Shown piece by piece: positions 29-63,655 of a DNA stretch of 64,000 nucleotides. How positions within the stretch are numbered: the first letter of the stretch is position 1; every line of letters begins with the position of its first letter. The stretch is from Octopus sinensis. Its lineage: Eukaryota. Position numbers and translations under genes: made by a program. The stretch lies in the NCBI RefSeq assembly GCF_006345805.1, contig NC_043018.1, forward strand, positions 14,384,001-14,448,000, given 5' to 3'. The notes beneath the pieces were generated by a model, which saw nothing but the letters and a program-made list of their open reading frames with translations, was not told where the DNA came from and did not search any database.

Positions 29-242
29 TTAGATGGTAAATTTACGAGAAAAAACCAGAAAAGCGATTACGGTTTGGACTATAATGTTATTAGTCACGTG
101 AACCGAACCAGCCATATCTTTACGACACGCGCAATAATCTCTTTGTTTCATACAGTTGTAACCGGCGCAGCATCTACATCTTTTATGTGGTCCGTGACCA
201 GCACATGGACCTCTTGAACATGAACTTCTCTTCAACATTTCA
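29..242 (-). CDS. G1 terminal exon: Cys-rich (8 Cys) knottin/conotoxin-like peptide with KR processing site and hydrophobic C-terminal tail
   Basis: Acceptor ttttgtatttacag, then (x)EMLKR|SSCSRGPCAGHGPHKRCRCCAGYNCMKQRDYCACRKDMAGSVHVTNNIIVQTVIAFLVFSRKFTI*. Phase-2 entry; three paralogous exons in the window keep the Cys scaffold. Confidence 0.85.
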
Positions 243-285
243 CTGTAAATACAAAATATAGTAGAGAATACAAAATATTATTAAA

Positions 286-1590
286 CTAGCAGAGATACCC
301 GGCGTTGCCCATGTTACATGCAATTGAAGAATTAGACTTTTCTGTTATATTTTCTGTAATGAACTGGAATACCTATGATTCGAATTTCTTCAAAATTGCA
401 GATGAGCGTTCTTTCCCTCTTTACACACCCTAAAAAAATTGTAATCGTGCTACATGTCTCCCATACTACTGATTTTTATGCGCATATTCCAAAATTCCAG
501 TCTTATCGAAACTGTTTAAAGGATTTTGCTCCTGAAAAATGAAGATCATGGATCTCTAAAATGTGAGAGTTAAGGCCCCTGTTGGGCGTGGGTGTCTTAA
601 TGTCAGGCAGAGAAGTTGCATTGTTGAGAATCTTTTTAACTTGGGTCTTATATCTATTGTTTGAATTTCTTTGAAATAGGAAATATATGTTCACTGGGTT
701 TGTAAAAGACAGTAAAGCTACAGGAAACGAAAAGACGAATGATCACAATAAGCATCAGCTACCCTACCCTAGTCGTTACCACTTCCAAAGTAGGCTTTCT
801 CACCATCCAGGTGACAGGCACAGCCGTTAGATGCATTATGGATCTATAGCAATTGGAAGGGCGTGACCCAACTGAAATAAACATTAACAACTGTGTGACG
901 TGAGGGCTAAGGAGAAATGAAAATGTCACCTCTGGAGTTTGCAAATGACCACTACACTGATACGTATCTGGGCAGAATAAATTTGCAATCTATAAATGTC
1001 TTTGAATAACAAGTCACTCATCTGGGATGGCCTTGAAATCAGTGTTACCATCTGGGGACTATGTGTGACCCAGTGGTAATAAAATGACTGAAAGTAGGTC
1101 TGCAATCAAATAACTTTACTCAACACTTTGCAACTGAATCAGTGGAGGCAAAGATGCCTGTCATTTACTTGACAATTTATGCAGCACATTGCAGAAATCA
1201 CGATGTAAGTGTATGTGAAAGCAAACTGTTAAACTTTTGCACCATTAAATAATGCTCATCTTTTATGCTCTGGTAACCCTACAGCTTCTAAGAGCACAAC
1301 TGCATTCGTTTTTGCTTAGATAAAATGACAAAATTGTGGGTGTTAAGTCCCCATGGAGGGGTCTTTCTAACTTGTAAGAAGATGAAATTTTTTAAAAATT
1401 ACTTCATTTGTGTCTAATATCTACGGTTAAAATTTTATCAACAGCAAAATGTATGAATTATCATGGGGGTTATGGCCCTTATGCATAGAATATAATATCC
1501 AAATTTCATAAAGATCCATTCAGTACTTTTGACCTAGTTTTGGATTGTAAAAGACATGACTAAAATTTGGGAGTTAAGGGCGCCATTAGG
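286..1590 (-). mobile_element. Probable non-autonomous Helitron-like element filling the last intron of G1 (copies at ~23885-25175 and ~52690-53858)
   Basis: CTAG end at 286-289 with the cccggcgttgccc subterminal hairpin shared with the Helitrons at 38249 and 43633; gatctttatgaaatttgg motif near the other end. The 5' limit is approximate. Confidence 0.45.
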
Positions 1591-1689
1591 GTGTTATATA
1601 TATATATATATATATATATATATATATATATATATATATATATATATATATATACAAACACACACACAAACACACACACACACACACAC

Positions 1690-2379
1690 ACACAAGTTAA
1701 ATTGATAGATACAACTGAGTGGGCAAACAAAAATATGAGACACAGCCTAGTGCTTTTTTATGTTGATAAGCCTGGTACTTATTCTACTAGTTTGTTCTTG
1801 TGATACCAATATGTTATGGGGATGTAAATAAATGAAAAGCATTTGTGAAACAGTTATGAGTGTAAAACCAGAGACAAAGACACATACATACACTTACATA
1901 TATACATACATATATATAAGATTGATTTGTTTCAGTTCCTGTCTACGAAATCCATATATATACATACACACACACACACACACATACACAAAGATAAATT
2001 GATAGATACAACTGAGTGGGAAAACAAAAATAAGAGACACCGCCTAGTGGGTTTTTTTTAAATTTTGATATTCCTGGTACTTATTCTATCAGTTTCTTCT
2101 GACACCAGTAAGTTATGGGGATTTAAATAAACCAACACTAGTTGTGAAGCAGTGATGAGGGAGAGACGCAAAGACACACTCATAGACTTACATTTATATA
2201 TACATATATATATACAATTCATTTCTTTCAATTTCTGTCTAAAGAATCCACTGACAAGGCTTTGGTTGGTCTGAGGCTATAGCAGAAGACACATGCCAAG
2301 TTACCACACAGTGGGACTGAACTGAGGACCATGTGTTTTGGAACCAAGTTTGTTACCACACAGCCACAGCTGCACCTAT
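1690..2379 (-). mobile_element. Cluster of tRNA-derived Octopus-type SINE copies and fragments in the G1 intron (also 25215-25880 and 51959-52680)
   Basis: Head ataggtgcagctgtggctgtgtggt with A-box and B-box-like motifs; body shared with the SINE at 11580-12042. Confidence 0.75.
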
Positions 2380-3078
2380 GTATGTGTGTGTGTGTGTGGA
2401 AGGTCACATTGACACACAACGAAGCCGGCAGCCCAGAATGAAAGCAGAGTTTACAGAAAGCTATTGGCTCATTTCTTGCCCAAACATTATGCACAAACTG
2501 AATGCTGCCACATTCCTTCACTACCATTTCTAGTCCAACGACATGATGACTGATGAACAGGAAGGTGAAAAGAAGCGAGTGTGGGGATGGCCGGAACAGA
2601 TTTTCAGAAACAAACCTCCACTGTTTGAAGTGAACGAAAGAAAAACCGTTGGAAACTTGCAACAGTATCGCTTGATTGTGGACATTCTATTCCCCCATTA
2701 TATCCTATTACTTTTGAAGACATCACACATAGGATCAACAGCTACCAAAAAATATCAATGTACTACCGCCCTATGCGACACGACGTTGTGTCCAACACAA
2801 GAGAAACAATGCCATTCCGGTAGGAAGATTGTCCTGGAATGTATATAGTGAAATCCTGTTGTTACATACATACATAGACATCAACGAAACGAATGCTGGT
2901 GGAATATTAACATCAGAATATCTGTCAATGTAAAAATAACGTCGGATAACATAACTTGAAGCAGGCAAGAAAATGAAAAAACTGTCATAGAGATCTCCGG
3001 TCTTGCTCGCATGAATATCTCTTTGGGAACCAAAGGAGGATGGTAACACTGGCAACTGTTGCAACGCTTCAGCTTCTG

Positions 3079-61400: not shown

Positions 61401-62000
61401 TATGTATGTATGTATGTATGTATGTATGTATGTATGTATGTATGTATGTATGTATGCATGTATGTATGTATGTATGTAGCTGTATGTTGTATGTATGTAT
61501 GTATGTATGTTTGTATGTATGTATGTATGTATGATGTATGTATGTAGTATGTATGTATGTATGTGTGTATGTATGTATCTATGTATGTATGTATGTATGT
61601 ATGTATGTATGTTTGTATGTATGTATGTATGTATGTATGTATGTATGTTTGTATGTATGTATGTATGTATGTTTGTATGTATGTATGTATGTATGTATGT
61701 ATGTATGTATGTATGTATGTATGTTTGTATGTATGTTTGTATGTATGTATGTATGTATGTATGTATGTATGTATGCATGTATGTATGTATGTATGTATAT
61801 GTATGTATGTATGTATGTATGTATGTATGTATGAATGTATGTATGTATGTATGTATGTATGTATGTATGTATGTATTTATGTAGTATGTATGTATGTATA
61901 TGTATGTATGTATGTATGTATGTATGTTAGTATTTATGTTGTATGCATGTATGTATGTATGTATGTTATGTATGTAGTATGCATGTATGTATGTATATAC
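55459..62000. repeat. ~6.5-kb (TATG)n array with TTTG/TTG/TAG variant units
   Basis: Directly visible; source of all YVCM/HTYI pseudo-ORFs. Confidence 0.99.
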
Positions 62001-62004
62001 ACAT

Positions 62005-63130
62005 ATTGGCGCAGGTTATGACTATGTGTTATAAAGAGACTGTGAATAAGTCCCAGGCTTACAAAGAATGGGTGAGGGGTCGAGTTCTTCGATAAAAAGT
62101 CGCTACTGTCAAAATGAGTGAAATAATTAAAATAACATAAAACAATGTGAGTGTGTGGTGGTGTGAATTTGTCCCCCACCGACACTGCTACACAGCCAAC
62201 CGGTGTTGTTGGTGTGTATACGACCTCGTAAATTGGTGATTCAGCACAAGAGTCCGAAAGAATAGTACTAGTCTTCAACAACTAAGATCTGGGATCGATT
62301 TCTCCGACTAAAACCTTTCAACTTGGTGCTAGTGAAATGACGGAAACCTTTCAAGAATAAAAGAATATATATTTTCACCGGTATTTTACGATATCTTAAC
62401 TGCTTCCTTCTACAGAGTGATATTCTTTTCGACTCTAGGTACAAGGCCCGAAATGTTTGGGGAGGAGGTTAGTCAATTAGATCGATCTCAGTACGCAACT
62501 GGTACTTCATTTATCGACCCCTTAAAGGATGAAAGGCAAAGTCATCGAAAATTTGCAGAGAATGTAATACCTTCGTAATTATAAACGAACTCTCCAATCG
62601 AATTCGCAACGGCGTCCGGCATGAACAACCCTGGAGTACTTTCAGACTTCTTCAACCATAATTCCAGCAAACTGTGTTGTTGTTGTTGTTAGTGTTGCTG
62701 ATGCAGCTGCCTCCTTCTTCTTCTTCTTCTTCTCTTCTTCTTCTTCTTCTTCTTCTTCTTCTTCTTCTTCTTCTTCTTCTTCTTCTTCTTCTTCTTCTTC
62801 TTCTTCTTCTTCTTCCAATCAGGACTCACGCCATTAGCCACAAGGAACAATCTCTAATTCGAGCCGTACTCTAAGCTACTAAGAATGCGTGTGGTAACTT
62901 GAAGATCCACCCACCACACACGATAGACTGGTGGTTGCACGGGCGTGAAAGCTACGTTGTTATCCTCATTCCGTAAACGGTGGCTTTTAACGGGTGGAGT
63001 GCTGAACCATCCTGGGGTACAGAGGATTCGCAATCTAGACTAGGGTCTGAAAGTTTACCACACCATAGTGGGTTACACCATTGTTCCTCTGCTTTGTGGC
63101 AGAAGTCACTTCCGACTACCAACAGGCGAC
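62005..63130. mobile_element. Degenerate SINE and repeat fragments with (CTT)n at 62715-62815
   Basis: ggcgcagg head, gaaagaatagtac, ggtacttcatttatcgaccc motifs. Confidence 0.6.
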
Positions 63131-63447
63131 ACTTCAACGCATTCTTTATTTTTTCAACGCCATATACAATCCGGATTTTTAATTATATTATATTTTCTTA
63201 ATAGTTGAGAAATTTGAGGAAATACATTTAGCAATCATTAAAAGAACAGAAAATATGACTGGTACTGATTTCGGTTCTTGCTGTTATTGAGTTCAAATTG
63301 CATCAGCATCTATACTTCAATCGACGTCGATAATAACAAAACATGAGCTTCATCTAATCCCTCTCTTAGAATTTGCTTGCTTTCTCCCTAAAGGAGAAAA
63401 CAAACTTATTAATTAATTTTTTAAACTTCCAACTATATTTTTTCCAG

Positions 63448-63655
63448 GGTCAAACGTAAGCAGATTGCTACACTTATATGTGTAAATGGACCCTGTAAAC
63501 CAAATAATGCTTGCTGCGGAAACTGGAGATGTCAATGTAACTCTGGCCTGACCTGCTTTTGTGCATCTAAGAATATGAGCCGTGTGACGAATGCCGGTAT
63601 ACTGCAAACTGTAATGGTTTTTCTGATTTTTCTTGTAAATTTACCATCTTATTGA
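63448..63655 (+). CDS. G4 terminal exon: agatoxin/ICK-framework 8-Cys peptide with hydrophobic tail
   Basis: Acceptor actatattttttccag (homologous to G1-G3), phase 2; (x)VKRKQIATLICVNGPCKPNNACCGNWRCQCNSGLTCFCASKNMSRVTNAGILQTVMVFLIFLVNLPSY*. Tail DNA and 3' flank are homologous to G3. Absent from the ORF track. Confidence 0.88.

Follow-up and report, generated by a model that had tools for sequence, protein, structure and literature searches.

The window analysed here, a 64,000 nucleotide stretch of octopus DNA, contains four paralogous terminal exons (belonging to units referred to below as G1 through G4), and each was predicted to encode a dibasic site followed by a domain with eight cysteines; their positions and translations have been verified. 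G1, G2 and G3 sit in three recent segmental copies, called A, B and C, the last of which is inverted. The features are as follows.

1-16675: segmental copy A, containing G1; identity to copy B (direct) 86-95%, to copy C (inverted) 89-94%
29-4582, minus strand: G1 gene unit, one part since broken as assembled
29-242, minus strand: G1 terminal exon, with KR, 8-Cys domain and tail
3483-3533, minus strand: G1 exon-2-like piece, with canonical splice sites
4520-4582, minus strand: G1 exon-1-like piece, with a canonical splice site
23706-28710, minus strand: G2 gene unit, one part since broken and truncated as assembled
23706-23841, minus strand: G2 terminal exon, with KR and 8 Cys, without the hydrophobic tail
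23710-47870: segmental copy B, containing G2; has additional insertions, among them the remnant of a retrotransposon
26982-27029, minus strand: G2 exon-2-like piece, with canonical splice sites
28649-28710, minus strand: G2 exon-1-like piece, with a canonical splice site
48666-54142: inverted segmental copy C, containing G3; from the alignment to copy A
49783-54114, plus strand: G3 gene unit, canonical splice sites throughout
49783-49885, plus strand: G3 exon 1 as open frame; family ATG at 49823 (exon-1-like piece 49823-49885)
50795-50843, plus strand: G3 exon 2, canonical splice sites
53901-54114, plus strand: G3 terminal exon, with dibasic site and 8-Cys domain
55458-61996: (GTAT)n microsatellite, 6.5 kb, 1657 copies with 88% matches
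63448-63655, plus strand: G4 terminal exon, with RVKRK site, canonical 8-Cys framework and family-type tail ending QTVMVFLIFLVNLPSY

All four terminal exons have a phase-2 AG acceptor, then a KR site and eight cysteines, spaced C-x4-C-x8-CxCC-x4-C-x6-CxC in G1-G3 and C-x4-C-x5-CC-x4-CxC-x5-CxC in G4. A regular expression for this framework, applied to the six frames of the window, matched four ORFs, exactly these four exons, and matched nothing in 100 block-shuffled versions of the sequence, so the four exons are not chance occurrences. The net charge of the G2 domain, computed anew, agrees with the earlier value of +6. The terminal exons of G1 and G3 are 90% identical DNA; in the copies around them, 1-1378 (copy A) matches 54142-52781 (copy C) at 94.4% and 1522-5730 matches 52782-48666 at 89.2%. 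It seems likely that G1-G3 arose by a recent triplication of one unit and that their Cys domains diversified after the duplications. The (GTAT)n microsatellite, which has a strong GC skew, takes up most of the sequence that separates the G3 terminal exon from that of G4.

A search of 1.8 billion proteins found relatives only in Octopus bimaculoides, namely eight uncharacterized proteins encoded by six genes on one chromosome (LOC128250513/514/516/517/536/541), and the non-coding flanks in the window align at 75-90% to the O. bimaculoides cluster on CM046622.1; both observations bear out the octopus origin suggested for this DNA. No transcript-derived relative of the family was present in the protein collections searched, and it is so far a multigene family known, by its sequences, from octopus only. 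The RefSeq models of the O. bimaculoides genes have exons of 64, 61 (55) and 211-226 nt with intron phases 1 and 2, which matches the proposed architecture of signal peptide, propeptide, KR and disulfide-rich domain spread over three exons, and the G1-G3 copies use the same splice sites. Exon 1 in O. bimaculoides codes for a putative signal peptide, MKGISVLLFCVFISYTFS, which is highly conserved, opens with M-K-x-(I/L)-S (n-region charge +1) and continues in a 10-residue core with a mean hydropathy of 2.9-3.2.

The upstream exon-1-like and exon-2-like pieces expected for G1-G3 were located, with canonical GT/AG sites. The G3 model (49783-49885, 50795-50843 and 53901-54114) is a 121 amino acid open frame as assembled, so the statement that G3 splices in frame is true from an upstream ATG at 49783 that is not the family's start codon and that puts an atypical 18-residue extension ahead of the signal core; it fails for the conserved start codon, which is out of frame with that core. 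From the family ATG to the donor, exon 1 measures 63 nt in G1 and G3 and 62 nt in G2, versus 64 nt in the O. bimaculoides models, which leaves the conserved start codon out of frame in all three copies as assembled. When exons 2 and 3 are joined at the homologous splice sites, G3 is in frame and G1 and G2 are not. In addition, the duplication boundary at about 23710 removes the C-terminal tail of G2, and the tail of G1 and G3 diverges near its end from that of all other members; this last change is common to both copies and so is probably real. Three of the four copies in the window are thus probably damaged (the family frame is lost at the start codon, and in G1 and G2 elsewhere as well), and G1-G3 are either young pseudogenes or carriers of assembly indels.

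The odds seem about even that the triplicated unit is in fact dead, with G4, if anything, the only functional part of a decaying edge of the family. The frame defects just described are what such copies would show, and the state of exon 1, which is the same in G1 and G2 and different in G3, fits inherited mutations. On the other hand, single-base differences in length are also the commonest kind of assembly error, G3 retains its complete frame from the upstream ATG, and the divergence among the copies is not that of pseudogenes, which would be expected to change at the rate of introns. Pairwise differences between the copies amount to 3-6% in introns and 0-1.6% in the signal exon, compared with 23-32% in exon 2 (propeptide) and 14-31% in the Cys domain. 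The Cys domain has diverged 3-7 times faster than introns, with no indels, no stops and eight of eight cysteines retained. The dN/dS values for the three G1-G3 pairs are 4.8, 2.1 and 1.8. Because of this rapid change without indels, stops or loss of cysteines, and with dN/dS above 1, it appears that selection acted on G1-G3 through most of the period after their duplication. Change focused on the Cys domain recurs in two tandem O. bimaculoides exons, which have 32 differences at 111 positions in the Cys domain versus 3 at 90 in the tail. These observations support a toxin-like mode of evolution (conserved signal, hypervariable Cys domain), although part of the excess exon divergence could be due to mosaic gene conversion instead of selection; the G1-G3 differences are concentrated in the second half of the domain.

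The G4 terminal exon is real, but no signal exon (exon 1) or propeptide exon (exon 2) of its own was found for it in the window. Spliced to G3 exon 2, it would continue the reading frame. O. bimaculoides LOC128250514 has two terminal exons in tandem, and the flanks of G4 show synteny with these. G4, an intact and family-typical terminal exon by its sequence, most likely serves the G3 unit as an alternative 3′ exon. The isoforms of LOC128250541 have exons 1 and 2 in common and differ in their Cys-domain exons.

The earlier reading left out a hydrophobic C-terminal tail. About 30 conserved residues follow the last cysteine and close in a hydrophobic stretch of 15 residues, which in G4 and the members with the standard tail begins 11-13 residues past that cysteine and has a mean Kyte-Doolittle hydropathy of 1.9-2.5. 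Only 1-5 residues come after it in these members, none of them basic, and an omega-site is not obvious. The G1/G3 tail is less hydrophobic and has two basic residues at its end. For comparison, a GPI-attachment signal would have small omega-site residues, then a polar spacer, then 12-20 hydrophobic residues running to the C-terminus with no basic cytoplasmic anchor. A C-terminal helix is also predicted.

Searches with the family against PDB sequences, Pfam and, by Foldseek, structures gave weak matches, nearly all of which are spider inhibitor-cystine-knot (ICK) toxins. The Pfam families of spider toxins tested were Toxin_9 (PF02819), Toxin_7 (PF05980) and Toxin_35 (PF10530), with the curated gathering cut-off as the criterion. 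The window exons have no Pfam match even at E <= 10, and no Pfam family reaches its gathering cut-off for them or for their relatives; the best relative is P0129, with 16.9 bits to Toxin_35 (cut-off 26.8), and a CCWamide-like neighbour of the family in O. bimaculoides has 18.7 bits to Toxin_9 (cut-off 21.3). AlphaFold2 models of G4 and G3 are of low confidence (pLDDT 64.4 and 65.8, respectively) and contain a predicted beta-hairpin, and their top Foldseek matches are ICK toxins below significance (E >= 0.48). The 8-Cys domain is proposed to be of ICK type, a fold defined by knotted C1-C4, C2-C5 and C3-C6 disulfides and a beta-hairpin. The family resembles the spider ICK toxins (mu-agatoxins, delta-palutoxins, purotoxin and J-atracotoxin) in its 8-Cys framework and predicted C-terminal beta-hairpin, but the precursor and gene structures of those toxins are unlike its own and all the matches fall below significance or gathering cut-offs.

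The original prediction recognized no named family here. That judgment is not supported; by profile, exon phases and position these genes are best read as a fast-evolving, derived branch of the CCWamide/agatoxin-like peptides (ALP; U8-agatoxin), a protostome neuropeptide family (Thiel et al. 2021, PMC8557429). The CCWamide profile matches the family in hhalign at 88.8% (P = 2.5e-6) with full alignments and at 93.4% with the Cys domain; the match spans only 35 columns, so the support it gives is moderate. The evidence for the link as a whole is this short Cys-rich match together with gene structure. CCWamide/ALP precursors are likewise short, with a signal and a non-conserved propeptide ahead of a basic cleavage site and, at the C-terminus, an 8-Cys peptide. 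Their genes also have three coding exons, of which the first encodes the signal and the last the mature peptide, and the introns between them are in phases 1 and 2; this phase 1 then phase 2 order is found in Lottia CCWa and in CCWa-like 3 of the nemertean Notospermus (PMC8557429, supplementary file 20). The cysteine order C-C-CC-CxC-CxC is that of G4 and all O. bimaculoides members, and the motif CC-x-G-x-x-C-x-C is common to both families. In O. bimaculoides the distance between a CCWamide-like gene (hhalign 97%) and one member of the family is about 8 kb.

There are also differences. G1-G3 have eight cysteines too, but one has moved (CxCC...C...CxC): another residue takes the place of the Cys that opens the first CxC, and an additional Cys stands two residues ahead of the CC. 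Every member lacks the W/F/Y-G-(K/R) amidation end and instead has its roughly 30 residues after the last cysteine, ending in ...VNLPSY or a variant, and the first loops are shorter (C-x4-C). The family's paralogues are numerous and clustered, their alternative terminal exons stand in tandem, and their loops are hypervariable with dN/dS above 1, whereas CCWamide is conserved and single- or few-copy, and the canonical octopus CCWamide is a separate gene. Some O. bimaculoides members have an aromatic residue between Cys6 and Cys7 (IFSFI, NFIFR); G4 (NSGLT), P0125 (RILLK) and others have none there. The codon split by the phase-2 intron specifies Arg when G3 exon 2 is joined to the G4 exon (..RRVKRK..) and Ser when it is joined to the G3 exon, with KR four residues downstream; in the O. 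bimaculoides family genes checked it is likewise Ser, with KR a few residues on, and in their CCWamide-like neighbour the intron does split a basic-residue codon. An octopus-born Cys-rich family that came by convergence to the common C-C-CC-CxC-CxC framework could account for the missing amidated aromatic end, the shorter N-terminal loops, the members without the Cys6-Cys7 aromatic and the lack of a significant Pfam or PDB match, and profile scores are inflated for short Cys-rich domains. We nevertheless regard convergence as improbable: in permutations with the Cys columns held fixed the score was 15.3 ± 3.8, and none of 200 reached the real score of 30.4 (about 4 SD), and the common motif, the same exon number and intron phases and the clear CCWamide-like paralogue within the same cluster also argue against it.

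Overall, the explanation that we favor with fair confidence is that this octopod genome window carries a cluster of genes for small secretory prepropeptides, which belong to a multigene family restricted to octopus and derived from CCWamide/agatoxin-like genes, with G1-G3 a recent triplication and G4 an intact terminal exon. Exon 1 would encode the conserved signal peptide, exon 2 the variable propeptide, and the last, phase-2 exon a dibasic or furin-like cleavage site, the hypervariable 8-Cys domain and the conserved tail. The family most likely began with tandem duplication of a CCWamide/agatoxin-like neuropeptide gene, after which the amidated aromatic C-terminus would have been lost and the hydrophobic tail gained. 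The precursor would enter the ER and lose its signal peptide and propeptide, and the knot domain would fold, its loops, under diversifying selection, perhaps binding variable targets. The tail may either hold the peptide on the membrane, as a GPI-attachment signal or short anchor, or be a conserved sorting or processing propeptide. That the peptides act in venom, against microbes or as neuromodulators is pure conjecture.

Conotoxin genes have a three-exon layout of signal, propeptide and mature region, with a conserved signal, a hypervariable disulfide-rich mature region and clustered paralogues in which mature-region codons diverge faster than introns. The octopus family has this same layout, signal conservation, hypervariability and clustering, and in G1-G3 the Cys-domain codons likewise outpace the introns. 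It differs from the conotoxin superfamilies in its lineage and its conserved hydrophobic tail, and no sequence relationship to conotoxins was detected (the best match is conotoxin GS, E = 1.5). This conotoxin-like pattern, the Cys framework of spider ICK toxins with the weak sequence and structural matches to them, and the recruitment of CCWamide/ALP peptides into spider venom (PMC8557429) would all suit soluble knottin toxins of the posterior salivary gland whose tail is a C-terminal propeptide removed in maturation. Such a venom function seems doubtful to us, however, as a strictly conserved hydrophobic tail is unusual in soluble venom peptides, the O. bimaculoides members P0123 and P0128 lack a dibasic site ahead of the domain, and the literature on octopus salivary gland and venom yielded no match to the family.

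A more speculative version of the favored CCWamide-derived origin, which we put forward very tentatively, is that octopuses evolved from the CCWamide gene a set of hypervariable knottins tethered to the membrane (GPI- or tail-anchored), with one signal/propeptide cassette spliced to alternative tandem Cys-domain exons. The comparison here is with the Ly6/uPAR "prototoxins" such as Lynx1, and it is one of analogy only, since those proteins have a three-finger fold rather than a knot and there is no homology. Both combine a small disulfide-rich domain of toxin type with a short hydrophobic segment at the C-terminus, past which no basic residues occur; GPI-attachment signals look like this. If this were correct, such splicing would supply octopuses with a varied set of molecules displayed on the cell surface, either modulators of channels or receptors or molecules for recognition. 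A neuropeptide would then have become a diversified ligand at the cell surface by a new route, and the Lynx/Ly6 prototoxins would have a counterpart with a knot fold in an invertebrate.

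The four terminal exons on which the original prediction was built all translate as it described, each into a dibasic site followed by an 8-Cys domain:

29–242, minus strand: G1 terminal exon, ...EMLKR, then the 8-Cys domain and a hydrophobic end
23706–23841, minus strand: G2 terminal exon, ...ARIKR, then 8 Cys and a stop five residues later
53901–54114, plus strand: G3 terminal exon, ...EMLKR, then the 8-Cys domain and a hydrophobic end
63448–63655, plus strand: G4 terminal exon, VKRK, then 8 Cys and a hydrophobic end

A pyrimidine-rich tract and an AG precede all four, which are entered in phase 2. 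When all six reading frames of the window are scanned with a regular expression describing the Cys framework, four ORFs match, exactly G1–G4, and 100 block shuffles yield no match. The net charge of +6 given for the G2 domain is obtained again on recomputation, and the upstream exons claimed for G1–G3 are there, G1 and G2 carrying pieces homologous to exons 1 and 2 of G3. The G3 splice sites are canonical (AAA/gtaagt, ttttag/AT, AAG/gtaaga, tttacag/TG); the claimed in-frame splicing of G3 stands as far as its sites and a frame of 121 residues go, but it relies on an upstream ATG that is not the start used by the family. The structural reading was largely right, and the cluster is real.

The four window exons gave nothing significant when compared with Pfam and PDB sequences, and the G3 exon gave no candidate in a word-indexed protein search. 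A profile search run exhaustively over 1.84 billion representatives returned three proteins at E ≤ 0.001, and a second round with the alignment of those three found eight. All eight are entered as “uncharacterized protein” of six Octopus bimaculoides genes (LOC128250513, 514, 516, 517, 536, and 541), which share one chromosome (CM046622.1), and none of the eight contains a Pfam domain. They are complete, stand-alone precursors of 109–152 residues, and an origin of the exons in a transposon or a larger protein was rejected. The precursors begin with MKGISVLLFCVFISYTFS and a variable propeptide, followed by a cleavage site that is usually (R/K)-x-K-R, a hypervariable domain with the framework C-x4-C-x(n)-CC-x4-C-x-C-x(4–6)-C-x-C, and the conserved tail ...IH-x-x-N-x-G-I-x-QTVIAFLIF-x-VNLPSY. 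For four of the genes the exact structure was worked out: the coding sequence is divided among three exons, of 64, 61 (55 in one), and 211–226 nt, which places the introns in phases 1 and 2. The predicted layout of signal, propeptide, KR, and disulfide-rich peptide on separate exons is the annotated structure of these genes. The window gene units and their flanks align to several units of the O. bimaculoides cluster at 70–90% identity (the best match is ~89% over short segments, ~115 kb compared), in agreement with the “probable octopus” origin first assigned to the DNA. The window coincides with none of the ~115 kb, and its DNA is therefore octopod but from another locus or another species. 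Within the O. bimaculoides loci fetched for comparison, intact family-type terminal exons at L001 21904–22123 and ~26880–27101 and an additional exon-1 copy at L005 6402–6467 (CM046622.1) lie outside any product returned by the searches; Cys-domain exons in this cluster outnumber the annotated proteins and stand in tandem behind single exon 1–2 pairs. The family's sequence strings and LOC numbers do not occur in the searchable literature, and no paper treating it was found in the literature on octopus or cephalopod knottins or ICK peptides. The family is genuine, so far restricted to octopus, and unstudied.

G1, G2, and G3 are not independent genes but lie in three segmental copies, which are 86–95% identical to one another:

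1–16675: copy A, with G1
23710–47870, direct: copy B, with G2 and extra insertions
48666–54142, inverted: copy C, with G3

The A/B boundary (~23710) cuts within the terminal exon, and it is for this reason that G2 lacks a tail. The gene units carry no mobile-element domains and the copies are 5–24 kb segmental duplications; a transposon origin was rejected on these grounds as well. The window (G+C 26–40%; no matches in Rfam and tRNA scans) also contains the following repeats:

18151–20908, plus strand: non-LTR retrotransposon remnant, three successive ORFs matching RVT_1
44257–46218, minus strand: non-LTR retrotransposon remnant, a 324-aa RVT_1 ORF and a 182-aa zf-RVT ORF
55458–61996: (GTAT)n microsatellite, 6.5 kb, ~1657 units, 88% matches, extreme GC skew

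The database proteins nearest to the reverse transcriptase ORF are only ~55% identical to it, and the remnant at 44257–46218 sits inside an insertion found only in copy B. Other tandem repeats, with 94–98% identity, are 107 bp × 3.5 in an intergenic part of copy B (42092–42465) and 33 bp × 6.1 at the B/C junction (48129–48328). Intron 1 of G1–G3 holds a 45-bp minisatellite (3622–3876, 27127–27909, and 50536–50697) in 5.6, 17.6, and 3.6 copies, a fast change in length within introns that are otherwise 95% identical. The terminal exons of G3 and G4 are separated mainly by the (GTAT)n array; the equivalent O. bimaculoides interval is only ~750 bp.

G4 is canonical for the family in framework and tail, and neither a peptide search nor a sensitive DNA comparison, in the G3–G4 interval or elsewhere, turned up an exon 1 or an exon 2 belonging to it. 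In LOC128250514 one exon 1–2 pair is followed by two intact tandem terminal exons 750 bp apart, of which the RefSeq model takes the distal one, and by a third beyond. The sequences just 3′ of the G3 exon (54829–55183) and just 5′ of G4 (63109–63318) are 89% identical to the equivalent O. bimaculoides intervals, G3 exon 2 and G4 join in frame to read ...EMIRRVKRKQIATLIC..., and the isoforms of LOC128250541 have exons 1–2 in common and differ in the Cys-domain exon. Given the lack of exons of its own, the flanking synteny, the in-frame join, and this isoform pattern, G4 is best read as a putative alternative 3′ exon of the G3 unit.

The three copies differ from one another by 3–6.7% in introns and 5′ flank and by 0–1.6% in the signal exon, and by 23–32% in exon 2 and 14–31% in the 111-nt Cys domain, where G1–G3 have no indels and no stops and keep 8 of 8 Cys. 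Nei-Gojobori estimates of dN and dS for this domain are 0.19 and 0.04 for G3–G1, 0.46 and 0.23 for G3–G2, and 0.33 and 0.18 for G1–G2. Similarly, two tandem O. bimaculoides terminal exons differ at 32 of 111 positions in the Cys domain (dN 0.43, dS 0.17), their tails differ at 3 of 90, and their flanks are 86–92% identical. Hyperdivergence confined to an exon amid conserved signal, tail, and introns is the conotoxin-type pattern, and its presence in this octopus family would mean that the window copies have been under diversifying selection following duplication. The differences among G1–G3 pile up in the second half of the domain, and mosaic gene conversion from other paralogues could also contribute to the divergence of the exon. 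Between the Cys domains of G3 (53917–54027) and G1 (116–226) the first 21 residues are identical and 9 of the next 16 differ; such clustering could reflect either selection on particular loops or a tract of gene conversion. Venom, immunity, reproduction, and neuronal or chemosensory modulation are all candidate roles, in no order of likelihood, and the toxin or antimicrobial role first suggested is likewise hypothetical; diversifying selection would speak against one conserved endogenous receptor. The divergence signature is hard to square with old pseudogenes.

That signature bears on the reading frames, which as assembled are broken in all three copies. The family start is the MKGIS ATG, present in G1, G2, and G3. 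From this ATG to the exon-1 donor there are 64 nt in O. bimaculoides (61 in one), but 63, 62, and 63 nt in G1, G2, and G3, so that in none of the three is the signal-peptide core read in frame from the conserved ATG. G3 is open only because an upstream ATG (49783, 40 nt 5′) is in frame as assembled; it prepends an atypical 18-residue extension to the hydrophobic core, and the homologous ATG of G1 meets a stop. G1–G3 all keep an ATG at this position, which as assembled shares its frame with the signal-peptide core in G2 and G3; were the family gene intact, an overlapping upstream ORF would start there. Exons 2 and 3, joined at homologous splice sites, are in frame in G3 and out of frame in G1 and G2, and the final few tail residues of G1 and G3 deviate, identically in both, from the otherwise invariant family ending. 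Compared with the family model, the defects as assembled are:

G3: one exon-1 frame break and an altered tail end
G1: one exon-1 break, one exon 2/3 break, and an altered tail end
G2: two exon-1 length defects, one exon 2/3 break, and a truncated tail

Since the divergence is hard to reconcile with old pseudogenes, the frame breaks are either recent or assembly errors, and the window holds a recent triplication, probably damaged, plus one intact, putatively alternative exon.

Modeled by AlphaFold2 from a 12-sequence family alignment, G4 and G3 reach mean pLDDT values of 64.4 and 65.8, a low-to-moderate confidence; the predicted elements are a β-hairpin within the latter half of the Cys domain and a long helix that spans the C-terminal tail. 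Foldseek found no significant PDB match to either model (best E = 0.48). The G4 top list, not significant, is almost all spider ICK toxins (target-normalised TM 0.5–0.6, rmsd 1.2–2.6 Å, ~30 residues); such toxins are also common among the best for G3, but these matches are weaker, mixed with unrelated proteins, and likewise not significant. The family profile matched only ICK toxins among PDB sequences, every one at E > 1, and the relatives have sub-threshold Pfam matches to Toxin_35, Toxin_7, and Toxin_9. Together these weak matches make a knottin fold likely for the modeled Cys domain.

The gene architecture, hydrophobic N-terminus, basic site, eight Cys, hypervariable loops, and conserved tail are all observed. 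In the scheme proposed here the precursor would enter the ER co-translationally and lose its signal peptide, a convertase would cut at (R/K)-x-K-R, and the domain would fold oxidatively into a knot. The tail, the 30 residues past the last Cys, is nearly as conserved as the signal peptide and consists of a polar spacer, a moderately hydrophobic stretch of 15 residues, and 1–5 non-basic residues; this layout is typical of GPI-attachment signals and is too short for a classical plasma-membrane anchor. Membrane tethering, by GPI or a short anchor, is a credible role for it though short of probable, a sorting or processing propeptide that is removed is only slightly less likely, and the remaining probability falls to some other role. 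One RefSeq isoform of LOC128250541 (P0129) exits the Cys-domain exon at an internal donor within the tail and so acquires a different, charged C-terminus; because the tail is swapped in this way, tail-less products may be made. Its segments, in O. bimaculoides locus L003, are:

17145–17213, minus strand: P0129 segment
17796–17963, minus strand: P0129 segment

No named family had been recognized for these genes, a view that is not supported: in profile match, exon phases, and a neighboring paralogue they resemble the CCWamide/agatoxin-like scaffold. CCWamide/agatoxin-like peptides (ALPs) are an orphan family of neuropeptides that is present across protostomes and was recruited into spider venom. 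Thiel et al. (2021) united spiralian CCWamides with arthropod agatoxin-like peptides (PMC8557429). The short precursor of this family leads from the signal peptide through an unconserved segment and a basic cleavage site to the 8-Cys peptide at its C-terminus. Of the three exons of the gene, the first holds the signal and the last holds the peptide; the phase-2 intron that falls at the cleavage site is conserved, and the Lottia and Notospermus splice patterns are phase 1, then phase 2 (PMC8557429), the same phases as in the octopus family. With hhalign, an alignment of five CCWamide peptides from the supplement of PMC8557429 matches the family at 88.8% probability (P = 2.5e-6, 35 columns), or 93.4% for the Cys domain alone. 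When the Cys columns were held fixed and the others permuted, the control gave scores of 15.3 ± 3.8 against the real score of 30.4, which 0 of 200 permutations reached; the signal common to both groups is a CC-x-G-x-x-C-x-C core. Furthermore, a 131-residue CCWamide-like gene of O. bimaculoides adjoins the family cluster, ~8 kb from a family member:

L006 1688–1880, CM046622.1 ~29.176 Mb: CCWamide-like terminal exon, reading ...HKR-NDILCAQWQWKC...CCDGFFCKCNPFWRANCRC...

The phase-2 intron ahead of this exon splits a basic codon, and the exon encodes the CCWamide-like 8-Cys peptide CKCNPFWRANCRC without a hydrophobic tail; in hhalign the gene reaches 97.2% against the CCWamide profile (P = 3.8e-11), and it is distinct from the canonical octopus CCWamide gene. 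The peptide also has a sub-threshold Pfam Toxin_9 match, and the assembly has a stretch of N immediately upstream. The simplest history would lead from a CCWamide through a divergent paralogue to the tail-bearing hypervariable family by tandem duplication. The defining amidated aromatic C-terminus of CCWamides is absent from the octopus family and two further membership features gave a mixed outcome, and the family is therefore filed as a derived variant, not a strict member; it has the appearance of a radically altered branch of the scaffold.

The window's own four copies matter less, since all but one of them, as assembled, look damaged. The family, having no literature record and only “uncharacterized protein” entries in a single species, provides testable candidates for octopus venom, immune, reproductive, or neuronal surface peptides, and a clean system for the origin of exon-restricted hyperdivergence beside nearly identical introns, of interest for cephalopod, venom, and neuropeptide evolution. 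If the relationship is true, it would be a second, independent, and far more radical diversification of CCWamide/ALPs, in a cephalopod, and the octopus version has clustered paralogues, tandem alternative mature-peptide exons, a conotoxin-like focal hypervariability, and a new conserved hydrophobic tail.
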